From positions 23,414-70,736 of the forward strand of contig NW_005434453.1 in assembly GCF_000315625.1 (NCBI RefSeq): DNA of 47,323 nt. The letters run 5' to 3'. The notes beneath the pieces are model-generated. The model had not been told where the DNA came from and ran no database searches. It saw only the letters and a list, made by a program, of their open reading frames with translations. Position 1 is the first letter of the stretch; each line of letters begins with the position of its first letter. The DNA comes from Guillardia theta CCMP2712. Lineage: Eukaryota; Protista; Cryptophyta. Below are positions 22,539 through 40,300 of the stretch, piece after piece. A program made the translations under genes and the position numbers.

Positions 22539-23717
22539 CTAGATGACATCGAATCTCATCGGCATCTTGAATTGCTGCAGGTGAGCAATGGCCACTTGAA
22601 AATGAGCTCCCTTGGTGACAACAACGGTGTCACCATCTGCATCACTTACATACGAAGATCATCACTTCTCGTGCTCATTGCCAATGCCAAGCGTTCTACC
22701 TGTAAGTAATCTTCATCGTCTGAAGATCCTTCGGTCCCGCCAAAGTCTACTTAACACGACAGCAGTCATGACTTGATGCTTCGGATAATGCTGGACACGA
22801 ACCTTGATTTCAGCCAGAAGGTCTTGATAAGAAGAGACCACAGTCCTCTTGATATCCGATCCAAAAGCGATCTTCACAGGCGTCTCTGAATTCAATTCCC
22901 CCCTCTCCTTGCGTTCCCTCTCCCCCTTCTCCTTGCGCTCCTTCCCCCCTCTCCTTGCGCTCCTTCTCTTGCTTCTCCTTGCGCTCCTTCTCTTGCTTCT
23001 CCTTGTGCTCCTTCTCCCCCTTCTCCTTGCGCTCCTTCTCTTCCTTCTCCTTGCGCTCCTTCTCTTGCTTCTCCTTGCGCTCCTTCTCTTCCTTCTCCTT
23101 GCGCTCCTTCTCTTCCTTCTCCTTGCGCTCCTTCTCTTCCTTCTCCTTGCGCTCCTTCTCTTCCTTCTCCTTGCGCTCCTTCTCCTCTGTCTCCTTGCGT
23201 TGCATCTCTTGCAGCCGTTTCTTGCAATGTCTGCAACCGCACTACCAACAGCACACGTCACAACAGATTCACTCGCATCACTCAAACCAATCATACACCT
23301 CGTCATAGTTACCCCATCCTTGAGCTTTGCAGCACTGAGTCAACCAATCCAATCAATACAAATATCATCTCTACAGACCATGCGCTTTGAAACATGATCG
23401 ATGACTTACATTCTGTGAGTTTCCCAGTGCATAATGTAATCAAAACAAGGTCAGATCAGCAGGAAGATATGTGATGGTGTCAATCTCTTACGCAGCACTA
23501 GTAGATCCATACCAGATGTTGCCATCCGTTGATCAAGACATACCAGAAAAAGCAAAATGAATGTCACTCCCTACCAACCGCATGTTTCAATCGAGATATT
23601 ACTTACATACTATCCAGTTCCATCACACCAGTCCATCCGAGCGAAAACAAAACAATCCCAAGATTACATGTCAGCCATATCGTCCCCTGACCGCATTTCA
23701 GCATCGTCACTTGCCCG
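22539..23717 (-). pseudogene. Gene A: microexon-encoded Cys-rich N-terminus + K/E coiled coil + PB1 domain; 5'-truncated, one frameshift
   Basis: Exons 23715-17 (R), 23607-09 (Y), 23492-97 (CC), 23410-12 (N), 23299-23334 (CCKAQGWGNYDE), then from 23241 CGCRHCKKRLQEMQRKE.... The spliced C-terminus PVKIAFGSDIKRTVVSSYQDLLAEIKTLAGPKDLQTMKITYSDADGDTVVVT...MRFDVI* has the PB1 basic Lys and acidic OPCA motif. Frameshift near 22950. Confidence 0.7.
22900..23195. repeat. 24-bp coding tandem repeat (KEKEEKER)n
   Basis: CTTCTCCTTGCGCTCCTTCTCTTC units; charged coiled-coil or single-alpha-helix-like peptide. Confidence 0.9.
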
Positions 23718-23775
23718 CTATACCGCACCATCCACAGTACATCCGAGCAAATACCGACACATACACAAAAGAATC
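23335..23775 (-). other. Microexon/intron array 1 (truncated)
   Basis: AG|CGG|GCAAGT, AG|TAT|GTAAGT, AG|TGCTGC|GTAAG, AG|AAT|GTAAGT. Confidence 0.7.
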
Positions 23776-24448
23776 AAACGAGGGTGAGAGAGCGAAGGGT
23801 GTTTGAGGTGGTACATACAATCATGTTGGAGCAGCTTATTGGAAGGTAGGTAGGGTCTGGATTGACAGAGGTGGGAGATGTAGTAGGGGGTAGGGTGGGC
23901 ACCTGCTGGCTGAATTAACGGAAGGGGTCAATTGATTGAGGTGGTCAAACTTTCGAAGACTCTCCTGGCTGGAAAGCGAAAATGCTGTTCTGCTCTTGTC
24001 ATCAGGCGATATCAGCGATCGCGGCTTGCTCCTGCTCCTTGGGTCAGCCACCCTGCTCTTCGACTTCATCCCATCCCCCCAACCCGTCCTCCTGCCATCG
24101 CCATGCTCCTCCTTCCTCTTGCCCGGGTCACTCCCCCCCCATCCCTACTCCCTCCTGCTCCCTGGGATGGTTTGGCCTGCGTTGTTCAGTTTTCCACCAT
24201 CCCCGATCTCGCTGGAGGTGAAGTTGTCCTCGTGCAGGAGTGGTGACAGGACCTTCGGCATCAAGTCCATCCGCAGGTCCTCGAGCCTTAGGATGTGACG
24301 ATGACGATGAGCAGCAGGAAGAGGACCGGCTGGCTCTCGCAGCACATCCGGTGGGTAGGCTTCAAGGACCTGACACTGCAGTGGTGGCAGGCTACGGTAG
24401 GGAGCAGTGGTTGGACACTGGGATAGCCTAACGTCATCACTCAGTGAT

Positions 24449-25205
24449 TGTTAGTTTCGATCCTCCTGACTGGTTGTTACCACCCGGTAAGCCTTGAGGC
24501 TTGGGGGACGTGTATCATCTCCCCTTGGAGCAGCAAGGTGAAGCTGCTAGCAATCTCTTTGGTGCCATTGCTGATGTCTGTAAGATCGCTGCTTAAGTTC
24601 TTCTCTGACTACAACCACTGTGACTACCGTCTACAACGATTCTTCATGGATCACAGCAGCTGCTTCAACCTGTCCACTTGTCCGAACTGCAACTTGAGCA
24701 TCTGCAAACCCGCCTCAGTGTCTCGGTGTAAGGTCTCAGCAGGGCAGTGATTTACTATCATTACAGTATTGGCATGTCTGTTCGACTGCCACTCCTTTGT
24801 AGTACCTCATCTGATGTTTCTGCTGGTGCGGAGCACAGCGAGACACTGATATGCAAAGGTGGTCGTTAGGGTCCATGTAGACCCTTCCGACTATCCTGAG
24901 AGTTGTCCTGAGGACCAGAGGACAACATCACTGACAGCCGGCAGTGATGGGGATGTCCGGCCTGAAGCACCTCATCGAACGAGGATGGTGGAGTCCAGGC
25001 TTATGTAGAGGAGACGAGCTGGCGGTAGTATCAGTGGAGACGGTGTATCAACAGCCGAACAAAGGTCTCCTCAACAGAACGTGTGGAGCGACTCGCTCGT
25101 ATTCAGATATGACATTGTTTTCGCACACTGGCTCGTTGTTTTCTTGACGAGATCACTTCCCGTCTCAACACTCTCTAGGGGGAGAGAGAGGAGGCGATCC
25201 TAACA
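24449..25205. mobile_element. Possible LTR-retroelement remnant upstream of truncated gene A
   Basis: TGTTAG...CTAACA inverted termini. No TSD and no recognisable protein motif. Confidence 0.25.
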
Positions 25206-26279: not shown

Positions 26280-29200
26280 TTACACTCGACGGAACTCCAC
26301 CAGCAACTCAGGGTATGTCTGTCGGCGATCGTAGACGATGAACTCCCTGTACTTTTCCAAGCACGCTGAAGGATGCGTATCCTGTGTCACCCCAATCACT
26401 GAGTCATGCAGGCGGTCGCTGCCCGGCATTACTGGTGGTCGCCTCGCGTTGTTCATCGCTTGCAGGGCCTCGTAAGGCGTTCCCAGCACAGCTCGCACCA
26501 CAAACATACGACAGATCCCGCGGCTGTCTGGCGTGCAGTACTCGTCGCTCTTGCTCGAGTTCTCAGCTAGGTAGATCCCAGCTCCAAACAAGCCTCCTAG
26601 ACTGCAGACCCGCTCGTCAAGCCCAGCCTTCAAGATAACATCCGCCATGTCGTGTTTGGTGCCATGAAACAGAAACACCTCGTTGCTGGTCTTGTCCTGT
26701 AGGAGCGATCTCTTCATCCAATCGCTATAAGTGCGTACCTCTGTCTTGGGATGTCGTTCGCCCTGTAGCATCATAAGGTAGCCTATAACCTTTCGCTGTA
26801 GGGCATATGCCGACCACAACTCCGAGTGCTCTATACGGAAGACGCGCTCAACCTTGTAGCCTTTATGCTTCAATCCCAAGTTGTCTCTTCCTTGGCCGAT
26901 GTACTGCGGTTTACATGTTGATGTCAACAGCTCTTGTATTCTATCCTTCCACTCGCTCGTTACGTCGACTTTGATGTTTGTGCCAGCAGAGCTTGCTAGA
27001 CCCTGCCAATAGCGGGGAGGTGTAAACACGGCACAACCGTACGCAAGAAGCAGCTTCTCTGTCTCTAAATCTCTCGCTTTCTGCTCAAGTACGGCCTCTT
27101 GCTTGCTCAAGGTCGTCAGCTCCGACTGCACCTGACGCTTTTGTTCCTTCAGAAGCCGCTCTTGTGTGCTGAGCTCTGCCTTCTCCTTCGGGAGTTGCTC
27201 CTTCCTCAGGTTGAAGTGGTATTCCAGTTTCCTTCCTTGAGAGGTGAATGCTCGCTGCTGCTCCACTAGCTGCCTCTCCTCAGACTGCACGTGCTCCATG
27301 CGCTGCTTTATGTCTCTCTCCCTCTCTGCTAGTTCCTCTTGTCTCCTCATGAGCAGCGCAAGCTGTCGATCATGCTCTTCTCGCATGGCAGTGCGCTCCT
27401 TCTCGAGATGTTCGCGCTCGAGTATCATGGCATGACTGAAGTATCGATGTGTGAGAGCTTCGGCTGATGAAAGTCTCTTGCTCGGAACAGGATCGAGAAG
27501 TCTAGCAACAAGATCCTTCGCCTCGCCTTGAAGCCCAGCAAGCAAAGCCATGACGTCGTCACGATGAGTCGGTCTTATCGGAGCTTCTGTCAAGACCTCA
27601 AGCATCACCAAGCCAAACGAGTACATGTCTGATTTGTGCGAGACTTTCATCTTGCCTGTGGAAGGGTTGGTGAGCTCCGGAGCCATGTAGTTCAGCGTGC
27701 CCACGGCAAGAGCAGTGGTCACTGTAGCTGCCAACTCCCTCGCCCGGTCCTCCTGCTCCTTGGACACGTCGAAGTCTGCAATCTGCGGCTCTGCATGCTC
27801 GTCCTTGGAAGTCATCAAGATGTTTGCGGGCTTGATGTCGCAGTGGATGATCCGATTCTGACGCAGGTGCTCGAGCCCCTGCAGCACCTGCATGAGCACC
27901 CTGTGCTTCTGCTGCTCGCTCGGGTCCACATCCTGCATCCACCTACAAAGCGTTCCTCCGACAAGGAAAGGCATCTTCAGGTATCCCTTCATGACCATCG
28001 TGCGAAGCTCGATCTTCTCCTCAATAAAGGCGCTGATCAGCTTCACAATGCAAGGGTGCTCCAGGCGACGCAACATGCTTGCTTCACGTAGGAAATGTTT
28101 TCTGCCGCTCTGACAGACGGTAAGGTTGTACTCCTTGATGACATATTCCTGGCTCCCTTGACTGACGAGGATGACATTATGTCGGGCCCCCATCTGACCA
28201 ACTTGCGACAGACGATCAACGACTGTGAAAATGTCGAGCTTTTCATGCCCGATCAAAACATCACTGTCACCCGCGCCAGCCCCAGGATCTAGCTCTTCCT
28301 TCAACTCCTTCATGTATTCTGGATAGTGACAGACCACACTCCAGAGTCTTTCCTCCAACCTCTCAAGCTCCCTGGTACTTGCCATGAGCTTCACTCTGAC
28401 CACATCCGTCTTGTCCTCGATCTCCTGGCACGCCAGCTTCTTTCTCTTGCTCTTCTCAAAGTCAGATCTAAGATCATACAGCTCGTCTTCCAGATTCTCA
28501 ATTGCTTGCTTGAGCTCTGCCCGGGTGTCCATCAAACGTCGCGGGTCTTCCATACTCTGAAATGTCTTACTGTATCTTTCCAATCCTTTGACGTTTGATA
28601 TCGCACCCAGTTCAAACAACACAGTTTGTGCCCATGACAAAGCCTCTTTTTGGATTGAAAGTAAAGAGCTGAGGGGAAACGATTCGATCAAAGTCGTGTC
28701 TATCAACACCTCCTCCTCAGACACAAACGCGGCTTCAAGAGCCATGTGCGTCTCCGGAAGCACATCTTCCAGCTTGTTCTTGTCACCAATGCTCAACACA
28801 CTAACGCTTCCATCCAGCAAGCAAGACAGCTGACGAAGACTATCAGCATATCGGCTTGCGATCTTCACCCTCTCCTCCCTTGCCGATGCCAATTTCCCAT
28901 TTACCATCTCAACCCAAGCTGACACCATTGATTTTGTTTCGTTCAGCTGATACTGAAGATCATCTGTAGACAAACAGAACGGAGCTGCAGCTTTCGACCC
29001 CCTCGTATCAAGATCACAGCAGCGTAAAACTGCCTCCACGTCTGTGACAAACCTTTCCAACACTTGCTTGTACTCCAATAGGCGGGCCCGACAACCACCT
29101 TCGAGTGCAGCAACGAGCTCGTTGGATGCCTGAATCAGTGCAATCCTCGTCTCGTTCCGTCTGTTTATGCTCTCACTCTCTTGCCTGGCTCTCTGCATCA

Positions 29201-31544
29201 ACTCAGCTTGCTTGGAATCAAGCTCATCCTGCAATGACCGCACTTGACTCCAAGCCTGCTGCATACGCATGTACGCTTCGTGACCCTCGCTGCTGAATAT
29301 TTCCGTCAACTCAACCAGCAATCTGAGCGCGTCCTCTCCTGAGGCGAGCTCTTGGCTGCATATCTTCTCCGTCAGGTCGTGCAGCGACAACATCGCACGA
29401 CCATGCAGGCCCAACGACGACCCATGCCGCATGGCGACCTTGACCGCAGATCGAAGAGTGCTGCACTTGTTCATGTTTTCAGAGCGCTCCCTCTCCCGCT
29501 CATCTCTTTCCTTTTGCTCCTGCTCCTCCTGGTGTCTGGCTTGTGTGGCCTGCTCTTCTCGTTTGAGCCGTTCCTTGCAATGGCTGCATCCATACTAGCA
29601 ACATCATCCGTCAGTCGCATCAAAGACACACTTCAAGCACCTCATCGTATGCCGACCATCCTCTGGACTTGGAGCACTAAAAACCGAAGTCAATCGCCAT
29701 ATTCAGCAAAAGAGCCATCGCTCGCAATCTGCTCAGCTTACATTCTGTCATTGTTGTTTTCACCAGCAATGAAAACCAACGCAAACACAAAGTCAGGAGA
29801 GCATCAAAGAGAGTGAATAGGAAAGTCTTACACAGCACTGATGGAAAAAATAGATGTTTGAACCACAGTCATAGGATAACGCAAGACATATGTCAGTTCC
29901 TATGTCCCCTGACCGTATCTTTCATGTTTGTTACTTACATACTATCCAGCCACATTCACGACCCATGTGATGGTAATCCGAAAGAAAGACAAAACTCGTC
30001 AGTCCCTATGAACCCCTGACCGCATCTTTCATCATCGTTACTCACATGCTATCAAGCCCCATTCACGACCCGACCGATGACAAACCGAAAGAGTTGCAAA
30101 ACCAAATTTCAGCCATCGTTCCCTGACCACACCTTTCATGTTTGTTACTTACAAGCTTTCCAGCCCCATTCGTAGCCAATCCGACGATCCACAAAATTGC
30201 AAGGAACATGTCAGTCCCTATCGATCCCTGACCGCATTTTTCAATCAAGATACTCACAATCTATCCAGCCCCATTTTGTTTCACCGGGTGAAAACAAAAC
30301 ACACAAAAAGTAGATGTCAGCCATATCGTTCCCTGAGAGCATGGTACATATTTCGTCACTTACCCACTATCCAGCATCATCGACAGTCCATCCGAGAAAT
30401 AACCGATAAGATTTGCAAAATGAAATGTCAGCCAATCGTCTTCTGATCGCATCATTGAAAATGCTACTCACTCCCTATCCAGATAATCGTTTCAAATCCC
30501 GGCAAGTAACCGATGGGAGTGATTTCGTTTTCGATAAAACACGTCAGCCAATCGTCCACTCAGCACATCATATGATATGAAAAAACACTTACTCCCTTCG
30601 AAGACAGATTCCATCCAAACAAGCCAGGAAAGAGTAGCAATTGCAAATCAAATGTCAGCCAACCGTCCCTTGAGGGAATGATCGGCTTCACCGGGCAAAA
30701 CTTTGCTTCGCCAATGTGTTCTTCCTCCTTGTAAATACAATTCTTGCAGGTGCCATCTTCATCAAGATGGAAGGTCTACATGATTCGTCAGTCTTGTCGT
30801 TCCCTGATGTTTCATTATTGTTACTTACATTCTATCCAGCCACATTCATGACCCGTCCGATGAAGCACTCACAGAATTTCGATGAAAAACCCACAGATTT
30901 GCGGAAAACACGTCAGCCAAACATCCCATGACCGCATCCTTCATGATTTGTAACTCACCGTCTATTCAGTCCAATCAATGACCCATCCGATGACAAAACC
31001 GAAAAATACACCAACATTGTCAGTCAGCAAATCGTTCTTTGACCGCATTTCCATGATTGTTGCTTACCAGCTGTCCAGTCCAATCAACAGCAGATCCGAT
31101 GAAAAAACCGAAAAATGCACGAAATTCGTTAGTCCTATGGATCACTCAAGGAATGATCGGTTTTACGGGGCAAAACTTCGCTTCGCCAATGTGTTCTTCC
31201 TCCTTGTAAATACAATTCTTGCAGGTGCCATCTTCATCAAGATGGAAGGTCTACATGATTCGTCAGCCCGATCGTCCTCAAACAAGATGATTGCGAATAC
31301 TACTCACTGCCTATTCAGACAATTGTTTCCAATCCCAGCAAGCAACCGATGGGAGTGATTTTCGTTTCGAAACAAGGAAAAACATGTCAGCCAACCAACC
31401 GTCCCCTGATCGCATCTTTCATCATCCTCACTTACATTCTATCCAGCCCCATACATATCCCAACCGACGTGAACAGACCGAAAAATTCACGAAGAATGTA
31501 AGTCCCTATCGTCCCCTGACTGCATTCTTCAATCAAGATACCGC
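26280..31544 (-). CDS. Gene B: zinc-finger/microexon N-terminus + coiled coil + Ser/Thr kinase + coiled coil + PARP-family ADP-ribosyltransferase
   Basis: Main exon 26280..29594 has VIKEY, HCDIKPANIL, DFD and GTLNYMAPE (kinase) and LFHGT, GIYLAENSSKSDEY and REFIVY (PARP H-Y-E). Upstream exon 29641-29676 (CSKSRGWSAYDE) and the microexons splice in frame. Start codon not located. Confidence 0.85.
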
Positions 31545-31630
31545 CTGTAAGCCGCATAGGCATAGTGATGTCAGCAAAAGCTGTCCCTCAAGACTTACTC
31601 ATCTTACGCATCTGCTGCTGTCTTCGGTAC
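29677..31630 (-). other. Microexon/intron array 2 (14 single-codon exons, one 6-nt exon, two 84-nt zinc-finger exons)
   Basis: Each ~100-120-nt unit reads (Y/A)AG|NNN|GTRAG on the minus strand (one GTATC donor), usually with a CTGAC branch site. ZnF exons at 31167-31250 and 30692-30775. Confidence 0.8.
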
Positions 31631-32500
31631 CGGGGCAGACCTCGATCTAAAGCATCTCCAGTAAGAGGGTAATCAATCCAACACTGATGTGGTGTGATGA
31701 GGGACTAAAATGAAGGAGCAAGTGAGGACGTGCAGGAGGAAAGTCAGCATATCCATCACACATGCAGGTCAAGCAAACAAGCATCGCATCGCTTATGCTC
31801 CCTTGCCTTGCAGTCTTGACAGTTCCTCGGCATGACGGGACAGCGGAGGAAAGGCTGTTTTTTTGACCCGCAGGGAGGTGAGCAGGGGGTGGACAGGGCT
31901 CAGAGCAGGGGGTCCAGATCTGGTCCAGATGGAGTCGGGGTCGATGTGGCTCCACCAGCTATCGTGGTTACACACAAGTCTAGCATTCTTGGTGACAAAC
32001 GGGTTGAAAGGGGGCGGCTGAGTAAAACATGATGGGGACTCTAATGCCGGGCCGTCAACCTCCGGGGCCCGGGGAGCCACCTGGGGACCATCGACGCAAG
32101 TCGAGAGTCGATCTCTTAGCCCCTCGTTGACTCCTTGCCCTCATTCAAGAGAGGCCGAATCTCCTCCTCCGGCGGCGGATCTGCCGGAGCTCTTCCTGGA
32201 TGGTGATGAACTCTGAACCTCAAGGAGACGATGACATCCTGCGTGGGGGAGCAGGAGCAGGAAAGCAGGAGGCGATGGAGAGCCGGAGAAGTTGATTTAG
32301 GAAGAAGAAGCAAATCAGAGAGAAGAGACAGCGAAGGCCGGGCGGAAGCAGCTGGATACAGGACGCGGCTGATATGGTAGCGGCCATCACCAACTTGACG
32401 AGATTTGATTCATATGGGGCCCTCAGTTTGACCTGATACTTTGTTGAACACGGTCTGCTTCTGCCTCCTGACCTTGTTCCTTGCCCTGCACGTGAGCCAA

Positions 32501-34302: not shown

Positions 34303-37300
34303 TCAAGCTAGATCATCAGGGTTGTCAATGCCTGAACGTATCTTTGACTGCAGCAGGCTGATACGGTCAAGAATGCTGTTGAGCAGGTCCTTTTGCAGAT
34401 GTAACGACCTGAGAAACGGGTGCTCCACTGGCTCCACGCATGTCAAGGCCATGTCAACCGCTACCTCATGAAATACGACGCCTCCCCGGTAAACCCTCGC
34501 CTGCACTGCTGCCACCAGCGCCTCCAGCCCTGACACATGCAAACCACCACGGTCCTTCTCTTGCTGCTGTTGCTCTTGCTGCTCCCTCTTTGCTTGAACC
34601 TCCAAGGGCTTTGAGAATGACGCGAGATACGTCCAGTCGACCTTGACCTTGTTGGCAGCTTCACTTGTCTCCTTCTCTAGCTCCGCAATTCTCTTCCACC
34701 AGTCTTCACCCCCCTTGTCGCCCTTCCAGCCTGACTCTGACTCCAAGTCCTTTGAGTCTCGACTTGCTTCATACAGCACCGGCACCAGCACAGGTATGAT
34801 GTACTTCCCTGCCTCACACGCCCGAGCAAACTCTCTCCTGCAGTTGCCGCTCTTGACGTACTTGTCGCTCATAAAGACTACAAACACCTCGCAGCGAGAC
34901 ACCCCGAGCTCCATCTTCTGCATGTGATCTTCCCCGGGGTTGATCCCTCCCTCCACGTCGAACCAGCACTGCAGGCTTGTCTGCTCCTCGATCCGCCGCT
35001 TCACCTCCCTCACCATCTTCTGCGTCGAGTTGTCGTGCCCCCACTGGTAGCTCAAGAACACCTGCGGCGGCGTGACGTCCAGCACGTCCATCTCCCTCTG
35101 ACATCCGTCGCAGTAAATCTTAGCCGTCAGGTCGCGAGCGAGCATGCTCAAGCACTTGGGTCGGCTGAAGAAGTGCGGGACTCTCTTGTCCTTCAAGCAA
35201 GACGGACACGGGGAGCTCGAGCCATTGAACGCCAGCACCTCCTCCACGGTTGTCGTATGACCCCTTGTGCAAGTGATTGCTTTGATCATGATCTTGTGTT
35301 TGATGACATCTTCCTGCTCCAGCTCTTGCTGCATGTCTGTCATACCCTTCCTTTCTTTATCTAGCGCTGCCTTGATCTCCGACCGATCAAACCTGCCCAC
35401 GGCTCGATCGCCTTGGGAGGCAGGTTGAGACTCAGACCTATCATGCAAACAAGCTTGGCACAGAAGCTCGTTCTGACTGGTGACCTCGTACAAGTCTTCG
35501 AAGCTTCCTCGTCCCTGATGCAGCTTCTTGATGATGCCGTCATACAACGTTCGCATCGAGCCTTGATCATTCTCCTTGTACTGATGGAAGATCCGGTATC
35601 GCTCCATCCCTTGTATCTCCTGCGGCCACCACTCGTTGAACCTGTTCGTCAGCTTGATCTGCTTGTCGTAGTAGTCTGTCAATACGACGGGGATGATAAT
35701 TGCTTCGCTCGCTGTCAATCTGTTCCATAACTTGCTGAAGCTACTTTCTCCTTGAATGGGTCCCTGCTCATCAACACACTCTGTCGATATACACAAGATG
35801 TTCACGAGACATTCATCACCAGCACCTCCACGTTCGTCACATGGATGTGTCTGGCAAGTAAGACCTAGAGGGAGGTTCTCCGCCTTGTAAAGCTTCTTCA
35901 CCTTTCTTTCAATATCCAGCCCACATGCTCTTGACCTCTCTCCTTGCGTGAAGATCCCTATTTGCACGGCCTCTTTGCCTGAGCTCTCCTTGTCGCTTCT
36001 CCTTCGCTTCATCCCCGGGAAGAACGCCTCCAGTTGCTTCAAGTCCTCTTGCAAGTTCTCGATCTGCTGCCTCGTCGACGCATCAGCTCTCAGCACGTGC
36101 TTGTCATTGTCTTCCCGCCAGCTCACCAGCAGCGTCCGGCCCCAGCCCTTCATCACCGCCATAGAGCCGCTGCAGTCTACCTCAAAGTGTCGAGCAGCGC
36201 ACAGCACGACCAGCCTGTCGATGAAGCCTGCGGGGAAAATGTTGTACTCGCACTCGACAGATGCGCACAGCGACTGCTTGTCCTTGTCCGTCACTGCTCG
36301 CTTGTGCTCATGCGTGAACGACGGGATGATGCCGGGACACAGCAGCTCTCTGCTCTTGTTGTCTGTATCCTTCAAGTCCTTCATCCCCTCGCCCAGGAAG
36401 TGCGCCAGATCGCAGCCTCGCAGCAGAGCCACCGCCTCCTGCACCTCCACATGGCTCTTGATGAAGCCTACCTCTTCTGATCTTGATGTCTTGTCTGTCT
36501 TCGCATTGCGCCAGAAGTCGCTGTCTTGCTGGGGCCACAAGTACTCCAACATGTCCTCGTCTATGATACCCAGGTGTAGCAGCTTCTTCGTCTTCTTGGA
36601 CTTGGTCGGGTCCTGCTGGAAGAAGTCGAGCAGGTGCTCCCAGTCATGTCGCATCACGCCCTTGAACACGTCGATCATCCACACGGGATCGATGAAGACC
36701 GTGTCCTCGACGGAGTACTTGCCTAGGTCTCTCTTGCTTTGATCGGCGCTCAGCTCATGACCGAAGTACTTGAGCACGCCCATGTCGTGCAAGAAGCTCG
36801 TCGCCACCTTGTGCTCTTTCTCGCTGACCCCTGACTCTCTCAACATCTCCTTGTACTCCTCTACCTTGACGTACGAGACAGACCCTGACTTTCGCTTCTC
36901 CACAGCCTCTCTCAGTCTCAGATAAGGTCTAGGGATTCTTTCCTCCCACCACAGCAGCTCTTTTGCAGTCTTGCACACAGATCGCCGCAGCTCCTTCACC
37001 CCCTGTCCCTCAAGACAGTTCACCCGGAAGCTCTCGCCTCCGTTGATGACGTGCAACGGCAGGATATGCAAATCTTCATCCTCTGCCATCTTCTTCAGCT
37101 CCTCTTCCACACATGCCTTCACCTCCTCACACTGATCCGTCACCTCGCTCTCCCCGACAAGATCGATGTGCGTTGCTACGAGCAACACGCTCGATCCCGG
37201 CACTCGCGCTTGCGTAGCTCGCAGCCATGTAGCGATCATCATCTTCAGCTCCTCCATGCTCTGCTTGTCTCGCTTCCCCCTCACGTTCCACACCAGCAGG

Positions 37301-40300
37301 TACAAGGCCCGCCTCACGATGAAGTACTGGTTCGTCTTGGCGTAGATCTGCTGCCCCCCGAAGTCCATCACGTCACACGTCAGCCCGTCAGCGTCCTCAG
37401 GCTCCCACTCGTGCAGGTCTATCCCGATCGTCCTCCTGTCTACCTCGATCTTGTCCGCCTTGTCCTTGTCTGACCTCAGAGCTCTCAGCACGCTCGTCTT
37501 GCCTGCCTCTCCGTTGCCTATGAGGATCAGGTTGATCCGCTTGTTCGCCTCGCTGTCTCTCTTGACGCTCTGCAGGTACGTGAAAGCAGCTGCCCCTCCC
37601 TGACTGGCGATCTCAGGGGGAGGCAGCTGCAGCCTGACGCAGCTCTCACACTTGACCTCCTGCAGGCTAGACTCCATGCTGCACAGCTCGTCCAAGGGAA
37701 AGTGGGAGAGGCTGGGGTTACCGGACACGTCGATGACTTTGAAAGCAACGCCGAGCTTGGAGATCCATCGAGGCAGGCTCTTCATCCTCAGATCTCGTAT
37801 CACATATCGTTTCATCCCATCTGTCCGCAAAGACATGTTGAGCGTGCCCGTCTTGCTGTCGTAGCAGCTCCCGAGCTCTCCGCCCGACAGGAGCTGCTTC
37901 ACCTCTTCGACAGCAGAGCTATCCATCTCTTGCATCCCGAAGATGTAGTGGCACTTGACTAGGTCCAGTCTCTCGGCAAACGGCTTCATCACGTTGTTAG
38001 CGTATTTGCGGAACTTCTCGATCTTGGCGATGGCGTCCTGCCTACTGGGTCTTGACGATACAAGATCTTGCTCAAGGTTGTGCACGCAGGAACGTCGATC
38101 CTTGCAGTGCTGGCACATGATTATTTGCCTTTCATCTTCAGGTTTGCCGTCGAAGTAGCAAACGCAGCACTAGAAAAAAGATCAGCCGCAACCCAGACCA
38201 TGCCAGCAAAGACCCGAATGGCAAAATACATGTCAGCCAATCATTCTCTGAGCACATCATATGATATGACACTTACTCCCTATGAAGAACGAAACAAGGA
38301 AAAACCAGGAATTTTGAAAAACAAATTCAGTCCAATCATCCCCTGACCGCATGTTTTATGACTCGTAGCTTACCAGCTGTCAAGCCCAATCAACATCCCA
38401 TCCGATGAATATACCGAAAAATACACGGAAATCGTCAGCCAGCCAATCGTTCGGAATGACCGCATCTTTTATGATTTGTCACTTACCCACTAGCCAGTCC
38501 AATGAACATCCCATCCGATACAAAAACCGTAACATACACGAAAATCGTCAGCCAGCCAATTTTCCCCTTATCCAATCTTTCATCATTGTTACTTACATCC
38601 TATCCAGCCCAATCAACATCCCATCCGACGAATAATCGAGAAAAACACAAAATTATGTCAGCCAATCGCCCCATGAATATGACCGCAAATTTCATATTCT
38701 TCACTTACTTGCTATGCAGCCCCATTCCGTCCATCCGAGCAATAACCGGTAAGATTTGCAAAATACTTGTCAGCTCAATCATTCCCGACCACATCATTCA
38801 TTTGTTACTCACTCCCTATCCAGCCCATTAAAAAACAAACAAGCCATCCGACGACAGAACCGAAAAATGAACAAAAACAGTGAGCCAATCGTCCCCTTAG
38901 CGAATGATCGGCTTTACCGGGCAAATCGCTTTGTCGATGTGATCATCTTTGTTACAGCCACACCATTCGCAGTTGTCATTGTCGTCCGGATCGAAGGTCT
39001 ATATGATTTGTCAGTCCGATCTTCCCCTGATCACATGTTTCATCAATTGTAACTTACCAGCTGTCCAGCCCAATCAACATCCCATCCGATGCAAAAACCG
39101 AAAATACACGAAAATTGTAAGCTAATCGTTCCATGACCGCATCTTTCATGATAGTTACTTACATACTATCCGGCCCAATCAACAGTCGGTGAATAACCGA
39201 GAAAAACAACAACACAAAATTTTGTCAGGCAATCGTCCCATGCATATTTTATCATCCTCACTTACCCCCTATCAAGCCCCATTCACAATCCAGCCGATAC
39301 AAAGACCAAAAAACGCAAATCCACATGTGAGCCAATCTTTCCCGATATTTGAAGATGGTTACTTACATCCTGTGCAAGCCCCAATCGTAGCAAATCCGAT
39401 GAGAACCCGATAAAATCACAAGGTACACGTCAAATCCCTATCGTCCCCTGACCGCATCTTTCATTATTGTTACTTACATTCTATTCAGCCACATTCATGA
39501 CCCATCCGATGAGACACCACAAAAGTGCAAAGAACACGTCAGCCATATCGTCCCCTGACCGCATTTCATCATCGTTACTTACCCGCTATACCGCCCCATC
39601 CACAGCACATTCGAGCAAATACCGACACATACACAAAATAAATGTCAGTCCAATCATCCCCTTCCTGACCGCACCTTTCATCATCGTTACTTACCCGCTA
39701 TACCGCCCCATCCACAGTACATTCGAGCAAATACCGACACATACACAAAATGATTGTCAGTCCAATCATCCCCTTACCGCATGTTTTATGACTCGTAGCT
39801 TACCAGCTATCAAGCCCAATCAACATCCCATCCGATGAAAATACCGAAAAATGAACGAAAATCGTCAGCAAGCCAATACCGCATCTTTTACGATTTGTGA
39901 CTTACCCGCTATTCAGCCTCATTCACAACCCAGCCGATGAACACCCACAAGATTTGCAAAGCTACATGTCAGTTCAATCATTATCTGAGCGAACGGATGC
40001 TTACGTAGCAGAACTTTCTATCTGTGAGGTGCTCTTGTTCAAGCTTCGAACAGGTCGCACACCGTCCTTGGGCTCCAGCTTTGAAGGTAGCCTGTTGTAG
40101 AATATTAACCCAATTGTTCCCTGACCGCATCTTTCATCATTGTTACTTACATCCTATCCAGCCCAATCAATAACCCATCGGATGATAAACCGAAAAATGC
40201 ACGAAAATCGTAAGCCAGTCAGTCGTCCCCTGACCGCATCCTTCATGATCGTGACTTACCAGCTGTCAAGCCCAATCAATGACCCATCCGATGAAAAACC

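Follow-up and report, generated by a model that had tools for sequence, protein, structure and literature searches.

The last 47.3 kb of scaffold JH993185 of the cryptophyte Guillardia theta CCMP2712, here called the window (the whole stretch of 47,323 nucleotides (nt) that was analysed), holds three genes, A, B and C, all on the minus strand. Their 5′ parts share one architecture, tandem units of ~105–112 nt that each consist of a near-identical intron and a 3-nt exon. In genes A and B the arrays end in a few exons of one or two codons and an exon of 36 nt, which together with the start of the main exon would encode a short cysteine-rich segment, and the question that the locus raises is whether such minute exons are translated and what they might build. 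A preliminary description, made from the sequence alone, had proposed real translation and a metal-binding anchor shared with gene C. The reading that we favor, with a probability of roughly two in three, is that the segment forms the constant end of a micro-exon-encoded N-terminal region in a receptor-like family, that it is translated as a module, that its small exons are joined stepwise, and that it folds as a zinc knuckle. The effector parts of the family would be PB1-like, kinase-PARP and Roc-COR-TIR. In the PB1 and kinase-PARP subfamily, the ~27-residue module (CC-N-C.K..GW..YDE-.GC..CK.R) would be assembled, with every intron in phase 0, from three exons of 6, 3 and 36 nt and the opening codons of the main exon; in the Roc-COR-TIR subfamily the same module would stand uninterrupted.

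The arrays follow a strict format. In the window the pattern YAG-NNN-GTRAGY matches 33 times on the minus strand vs once on the plus strand, and the distance from a cassette-type acceptor to the following donor is exactly 3 nt in 46 cases and never 9 nt. The tandem exons are symmetric (multiples of 3 nt), as in micro-exon genes of the Schistosoma type, and the terminal ones measure 6, 3 and 36 nt. Among the 53 one-codon exons in the window arrays and in two further Roc-COR-TIR paralogues, L001 and L002, none is a stop codon (~2.5 expected, p ~0.08), and their first and second positions are close to maximal entropy (1.95 and 1.88 bits) beside invariant splice sites.

The triplets, peptides and exon sizes (3, 3, 6, 3 and 36 nt) that the preliminary description had listed for genes A and B are all present, with identical sizes in both. 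Gene A features, given like all those below in window positions on the minus strand, are CGG (R; 23715..23717), TAT (Y; 23607..23609), TGCTGC (CC; 23492..23497), AAT (N; 23410..23412), the 36-nt exon CCKAQGWGNYDE (23299..23334) and a main exon (22803..23241) whose translation runs from CGCRHCKKR through a 30-nt repeat, (KEKEEKERKE)n, to a PB1-like start. The terminal small exons and introns of gene B (29595..30048) comprise CAT (30048-30046), TAT (29941-29939), TGCTGT (29837-29832), AAT (29744-29742) and the 36-nt exon CSKSRGWSAYDE (29676-29641), followed by a main exon (26283..29594) that opens with YGCSHCKER and encodes a kinase and a PARP domain (Pfam Pkinase 9e-39, PARP 4.7e-20); the module frame is the frame of this kinase-PARP open reading frame (ORF). 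Another kinase-PARP gene of G. theta, B2 (L004, on scaffold JH992993), which was reached via the cluster of a transcript-derived homologue, has the terminal structure CGG, TGTTGT, AAT, a 36-nt exon CLKISGWPDYDE and a main exon beginning DGCELCKQRR. Every small exon in A, B and B2 lies between AG and GT, with GC in place of GT after the gene A CGG.

Selection is only weakly evident when genes A and B are compared alone. Their three 3′-most introns are strongly diverged, as had been noted, and lie near shuffle level (55–57% identity with splice sites trimmed, vs 50% ± 3% for shuffles), while the Y, CC and N exons share 11 of 12 bases (p ~0.02 at an intron identity of ~0.6, gapped alignment) and the 36-nt exons 22 of 36, a level that the introns also reach. 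The evidence becomes strong once further paralogues join. The B2 introns match those of A and B at 0.41–0.56 identity vs 0.45–0.51 for shuffles, and the intron lengths in A/B/B2 (79/87/87, 75/65/61 and 57/46/55 nt) differ by non-multiples of 3; the exon sizes of 6, 3 and 36 nt are unchanged. The Cys-Cys exon reads TGCTGC in A, TGCTGT in B and TGTTGT in B2, and AAT is invariant in these three genes and in a further paralogue, P, which is known as RNA alone and lies in neither the window nor the compared loci. Across the four G. theta paralogues used for codon comparison (A, P, B and B2), 15 of the 27 residues are invariant (CCNC.K..GW..YDE.GC..CK.R); the third position varies in eight of these 15 codons, every difference being synonymous, and 21 of the 24 first and second positions vary in the remaining 12 codons.

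The module of A, B and B2 thus has the property expected of coding micro-exons, i.e., size, phase and residues are kept while the introns drift, and purifying selection acts on its exon sizes and residues. This agrees with the earlier proposal of protein-level selection and phase-0 introns, and with its prediction that the triplets would not drift with intron sequence and that the changes would show a synonymous bias. Since the 6/3/36 exons have stayed intact while the paralogue introns diverged to randomness, the micro-exon-encoded module is almost certainly translated at the level of the family. The tyrosine, however, which had been counted among the conserved core residues, has to be removed from that set; its position is occupied by R in B2 and by S in two proteins of Hanusia phi. 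The RNA of paralogue P reads ..gatag-GGG-AAA-TAT-TGCTGC, and given the 46:0 count for exons of 3 vs 9 nt, GGG-AAA-TAT is most simply explained as three joined one-codon exons; this exon structure is deduced rather than read because the genomic locus of P is not among the compared sequences.

In the sister genus, the homologous segment is found in two transcript-derived kinase-PARP proteins of Hanusia phi, P0007 (..ECHCAKKCGWSDYNTDACSECK.. / ..SECHCAKKCGWSDYNTDACSECKIRF..) and P0038 (..FHCAKYDGWTDYDQYACGHCR.. / ..SAFHCAKYDGWTDYDQYACGHCRARL..), which carry it in frame with the kinase-PARP part, have the C-H-C residues contiguous in the mRNA, and align to gene B from the first residues of the gene B main exon. 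A transcript contig from the same gene as P0038 (L003) reads ..ccatag|TATGCATGC.., with an intron kept at the junction that corresponds to the last intron of A, B and B2. The in-frame segment and the intron at the same junction show that the module is coding in Hanusia and that the intron position is shared. Within positions 1-100 of L003, the last intron is retained over at least 92 nt before YACGHC, and the EukProt entry P0038 is spliced; retention of the last intron seems to be common to Guillardia and Hanusia. A protein search with residues 1-200 of P0007 returned only itself and one 94-aa fragment with no gene on record, and a search of JGI metagenome contigs with the 36-nt exon pattern yielded no cryptophyte transcript, its six matches being unrelated and probably of bacterial origin.

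The equivalent segment that had been pointed out in gene C, CCVC...CQHCK, opens the main exon of that gene at 38169. This exon (34306..38169) starts with CCVC-x14-CQHCK and continues into Roc-COR-TIR (Pfam Roc, COR-A/B and TIR_2), and gene C corresponds to GUITHDRAFT_121310 with 100% identity. In all three Roc-COR-TIR paralogues (gene C, L001 and L002), the main exon begins with CCxC-x13/14-CQHCK right after the last one-codon exon. Comparison of nine module sequences (A, P, B, B2, C, L001, L002, P0007 and P0038) reveals invariant cysteines at positions −5, +8 and +11 relative to GW, together with a cysteine at −7 or a histidine at −6, and the core present in all members is [C/H]xC-x13/14-CxxC-K/R. 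The shared anchor proposed earlier as CCxC-x13/14-CxxC holds in the form [C/H]xC...CxxC in nine of nine sequences. The histidine of CxHC is not conserved; nor is the first cysteine of CC, which is E or A in Hanusia.

Four Cys/His ligand positions at conserved spacing, the pattern expected of a zinc knuckle, are found in each of the nine sequences. The module fits a Cys4/Cys3His zinc knuckle, and metal binding is a reasonable inference from the cysteine pattern alone. The AlphaFold2 model of the gene C module (four-row alignment) has predicted local distance difference test (pLDDT) scores of 62-82, and in it a long helix begins at CxxC. The four ligands would bind one zinc ion, giving a knuckle that caps this helix and may hold the variable residues in place, which would be contributed by the upstream one-codon exons and by five hypervariable codons of the 36-nt exon. 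Known Cys4/Cys3His zinc knuckles and the treble-clef-like and RanBP2-type fingers resemble the module in having ligand pairs 13–14 residues apart, the second of which (CxxC) opens a helix in the AlphaFold2 model, and in having a loop tryptophan. RanBP2-type fingers follow the pattern W-x-C-x2-4-C-x3-N-x6-C-x2-C. The order of Trp and Cys in the module differs from this, Pfam and PDB give no match to it, and its metal binding is putative.

How the small exons are joined can be followed in gene A, where RNA contigs from the runs X1, X2 and X3 were placed on one stretch (23150-24450, which avoids the 30-nt repeat); genes B and C lie outside this comparison. The aligner cannot place 3-nt exons, and the absence from the tables of fully spliced reads with such exons is consequently uninformative. 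Contigs identical to gene A define three of the five terminal introns and six splice sites, base-exact and with GT..AG ends. The intron between Y and CC (109 nt, 23498..23606) is confirmed in X1 (depth 180) and X2 by the joint 23497/23607, which uses the donor of TAT and the acceptor of TGCTGC, and the intron between N and the 36-nt exon (75 nt, 23335..23409) is confirmed in the same two runs by the joint 23334/23410, which uses the donor of AAT. Both splice sites of the 36-nt exon are confirmed. For the last intron, between the 36-nt exon and the main exon (57 nt, 23242..23298), spliced and retained forms coexist; in X1 the spliced joint has a depth of 62.9 vs 161 for the retaining contig, and overall this intron is retained in ~70% of gene A RNA and in about half of P RNA.

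The predicted intron between CC and N (79 nt, GTAAGA...CACAG, 23413..23491) behaves differently, as it is kept in all RNA contigs that cover it, including X1 record 4 and X2 record 8 of gene A. It bears the marks of an intron in both A and B, with GTAAGA/GTAAGT donors, CTGAC 43–48 nt upstream of the acceptor and AG-free tails of 70 and 80 nt (28–80 nt among the introns that flank micro-exons), and its retention introduces an in-frame stop in both genes (TGA in A). It persists in molecules from which the Y-CC and N-36 introns are gone, as expected of a detained intron. In plants, micro-exons tend to have detained flanking introns, above all on the upstream side, which are spliced once polyadenylation has taken place (PMC8831610). 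The loss of the downstream intron of each 3-nt exon and the presence of the upstream one match the plant order, which supports stepwise splicing without proving its completion. The small exons would accordingly be joined in steps that start with the downstream introns and leave the one before the 3-nt exon until last.

Several observations weigh against our explanation. No read or contig joins CC to N, although RNA joints use the acceptor of CC, the donor of N and the 36-nt exon at both ends; all four covering contigs (X1 and X2 for gene A, X1 and X3 for P) retain the intron. The X1 depths of gene A (225 for the main exon, 180 for the CC-N-retaining contig, ~52 with the N-36 intron unspliced) roughly balance, so that fully spliced gene A RNA must be rare in this run. 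The observed first exon of gene A (23903..24281; X1 record 4, X2 record 8) is non-coding in the Cys frame, lacks an in-frame AUG and has a stop four codons before the junction; the first in-frame AUG sits in the main exon. Furthermore, the frame is broken at a G6 run (22956-22935), where the PB1-like part is one base out of register with the Cys/KEKE frame, and the public model of gene A probably takes as its start an ATG that lies within the CC-N intron. The latter conclusion comes from a reconstruction, not from the model itself: ATG 23432 within the intron, an acceptor 11 nt inside the main exon and a frame-0 stop yield exactly the annotated span and 159 residues. With regard to the fold, the module has no Pfam match even at E up to 10 (L001 and L002 segments aside); a PDB sequence search gave chance-level matches only, and no Foldseek hit had an E of 0.001 or below. 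Structure prediction, which had been suggested, gave a moderately confident model for gene C but a poor one for the Hanusia module (pLDDT 47-57), and the cysteine at −7 is replaced by Phe in P0038.

Among the alternatives, the one that fares best concerns gene A itself, as a pseudogene or non-productive, decaying duplicate of P whose micro-exon codons are conserved only through recent duplication. We consider this a serious possibility, if somewhat the less probable one, and it is compatible with the family-level explanation. The flanks of the 36-nt exon differ between A and P at 11 of 145 positions (~92% identity), and P RNA is 5–25 times more abundant than gene A RNA. The absence of an in-frame AUG, retention of the CC-N intron in ~80% or more of the RNA and the frame break ahead of the PB1-like part point in the same direction, as does the use of an acceptor inside a cassette intron. 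This last feature creates an 80-nt exon (23686-23607) that consists of intron-cassette sequence and ends with TAT, whose own acceptor is unseen in gene A RNA; the CAG of CAGGGGACGATATGG serves as 3′ splice site (acceptor 23687). The PB1-like 3′ exons also fit decay, because they could not be brought into one frame with simple GT-AG introns. On the other hand, the frame would run on unbroken if the G6 run were shorter by one G, and the frame change reflects either a fault of the assembly or a genuine frameshift; M-I-R-Y-CC-N would be read in frame from an alternative first exon, ATGATT|gtatgt (23824-23819); and the module frame itself contains neither stop nor frameshift. Gene A may thus be a weakly productive or decaying duplicate of the more highly expressed P. 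The family-level claim rests on B, B2, P and Hanusia, and the preliminary proposal of real translation stands for the family but not for the gene A copy on which it was partly built.

Some further features of gene A and P were recorded alongside. The one-codon exon CGG, taken earlier as part of the gene A series, has AG before and a GC donor (GCAAGT) after it, occurs in no RNA contig and is skipped, the splice from the first exon, with the joint 23685/23902 in X1 and X2, landing downstream of it. The motif CAGGGGACGATATGG lies ~25–30 nt inside cassette introns, at 23675-23689 and 39543-39557, and the surrounding ATGCGGTCAGGGGA is kept in the cassette consensus. Between 24281 and 24282, contigs from three RNA runs show 163 additional letters, with six mismatches over the next 128 nt; the gene A contig ends exactly at this point, and the additional letters come from a related repeat at another site or mark an indel against the assembly. 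For P, the CC-N-retaining contig holds ~12% of the main-exon depth, the remainder not being placeable on the window. Downstream, about ten 30-nt copies encode KEKEEKERKE in gene A (22890-23190), and the PB1-like 3′ exons at 22540-22803 (VKIAFGSDIKR..., ...DGDTVVVTKGAHFQVAIAH...) belong to no public gene model; the PB1-like segment in this 3′ part has no Pfam match. The ORF from ATG 23432 (MHWETHR...) was rejected as the true product of the family: the purine-rich repeat lacks stops in all three frames, and the frame used by B, B2 and Hanusia is the Cys frame.

A second alternative assigns the cysteines of the module a different role, S-acylation (palmitoylation) or a redox site that tethers the protein to the membrane instead of binding zinc. 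CCxC and CCxCC clusters beside basic residues resemble known acylation motifs, and the failure to match any zinc-finger family would be in line with such a function. We regard it as unlikely, since the first cysteine of CC is lost in Hanusia and the cysteine at −7 in P0038, the paired [C/H]xC...CxxC is kept at fixed spacing in all nine sequences, and adjoining exons of the same genes encode CxxC...H...C units. Comparably unlikely, and slightly more so, is the third alternative, that CC, interval and N form a single 88-nt exon serving as untranslated leader or poison stop, with the protein starting downstream at ATG 23432 or at a Met of the main exon: retention of the interval in every contig of gene A and P from three runs, the agreement of the ATG 23432 reconstruction with the public 159-aa model in span and length and the missing upstream AUG of gene A would suit it, but the interval differs by 8 nt between A and B/B2 and is similar only at shuffle level while the flanking 6 + 3 nt are protein-invariant, Hanusia mRNAs carry C-H-C contiguously and in frame, the gene B module shares the kinase-PARP frame, and the missing joint is uninformative for exons that the aligner cannot place.

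Comparison of A with P draws attention to the 36-nt exon itself. Within it, 10 of 36 positions differ, all of them in five codons and all non-synonymous, vs 11 of 145 positions in the flanks (88-nt CC-N unit and last intron; Fisher p = 0.002). The clustering indicates that the otherwise constant module (C-x-K-x-x-GW-x-x-YDE) holds hypervariable positions like those of the upstream one-codon exons. A bolder interpretation, which we put forward with considerable doubt, is that diversification in this receptor-like family proceeds codon by codon, even within the constant module. If true, recognition diversity in a unicellular alga would be generated by a targeted process, such as codon-scale conversion or hypermutation, or by extreme positive selection, and the slow, stepwise splicing of tiny exons might serve as a regulatory gate.

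Gene B (26283-29594; L011 19236-21044) encodes at least 1104 aa in one exon, for which the public annotation has only two fragments, of 214 and 339 aa; a full-length model was absent from the protein search. A protein homologue search with the gene B N-terminal region gave no match, low-complexity words having swamped the candidates. Upstream of its array lies a 39-nt phase-0 exon, IEVCPGTEDSSRC (31608-31646), and no ATG could be placed in phase at two donors near 31600; the gene would start further upstream or in an unusual manner, and the 39-nt exon suggests an upstream continuation. Two near-identical 84-nt exons, TFHLDEDGTCKNCIYKEEEHIGEAKFCP (31167-31250 and 30692-30775), each with CxxC...H...C, are interspersed among the one-codon exons of gene B.

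Full-text searches of the literature turned up no paper on Guillardia micro-exons, single-codon exon arrays or the cysteine module. Brown algae reportedly possess exon-modular candidate immune receptors of the LRR-ROCO and NB-ARC-TPR types, which Zambounis et al. are said to have described in 2012. Like the G. theta family, these combine an algal Roco-type GTPase with a variable recognition part made of repeated exon units; the brown algal unit is a whole LRR or TPR exon, whereas that of G. theta is a single codon, with the constant cysteine module following the array. The micro-exon genes of Schistosoma have very short symmetric exons of 3-81 bp (PMC10526429), runs of which build a variable protein region, the frame being kept whichever exon is used, and in this they resemble G. 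theta. They differ in that the G. theta exons are mostly of one codon and the introns measure 46–110 nt and are mostly copies of one cassette, in contrast to long introns, and in that the products carry intracellular signalling domains (kinase-PARP, Roc-COR-TIR and PB1-like) and would not be of the secreted type; moreover, the stretch studied here is a constant part, not the variable region. Plant coding micro-exons (1-15 nt; PMC8831610) share with those of G. theta the conserved size and phase, the omission from annotation and the retention of upstream introns, which in plants are spliced late. They occur singly or in pairs inside housekeeping domains, whereas in G. theta three small exons terminate an array of up to ~20 one-codon exons.

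Exons of one or two codons are usually isolated curiosities, and here they are regular building blocks of a gene family. Public gene models miss the module entirely, with gene B split in two and gene A probably starting in an intron, and the partly spliced RNAs offer a handle on how the spliceosome processes 3-nt exons. The main reason to regard the arrays as translated, and not as repeat debris, is the selection on the protein that the module encodes. The module would represent a new cysteine-rich domain, absent from current annotation, that connects a hypervariable N-terminus with effectors of immune type (TIR, PARP, kinase and Roc) in a cryptophyte.

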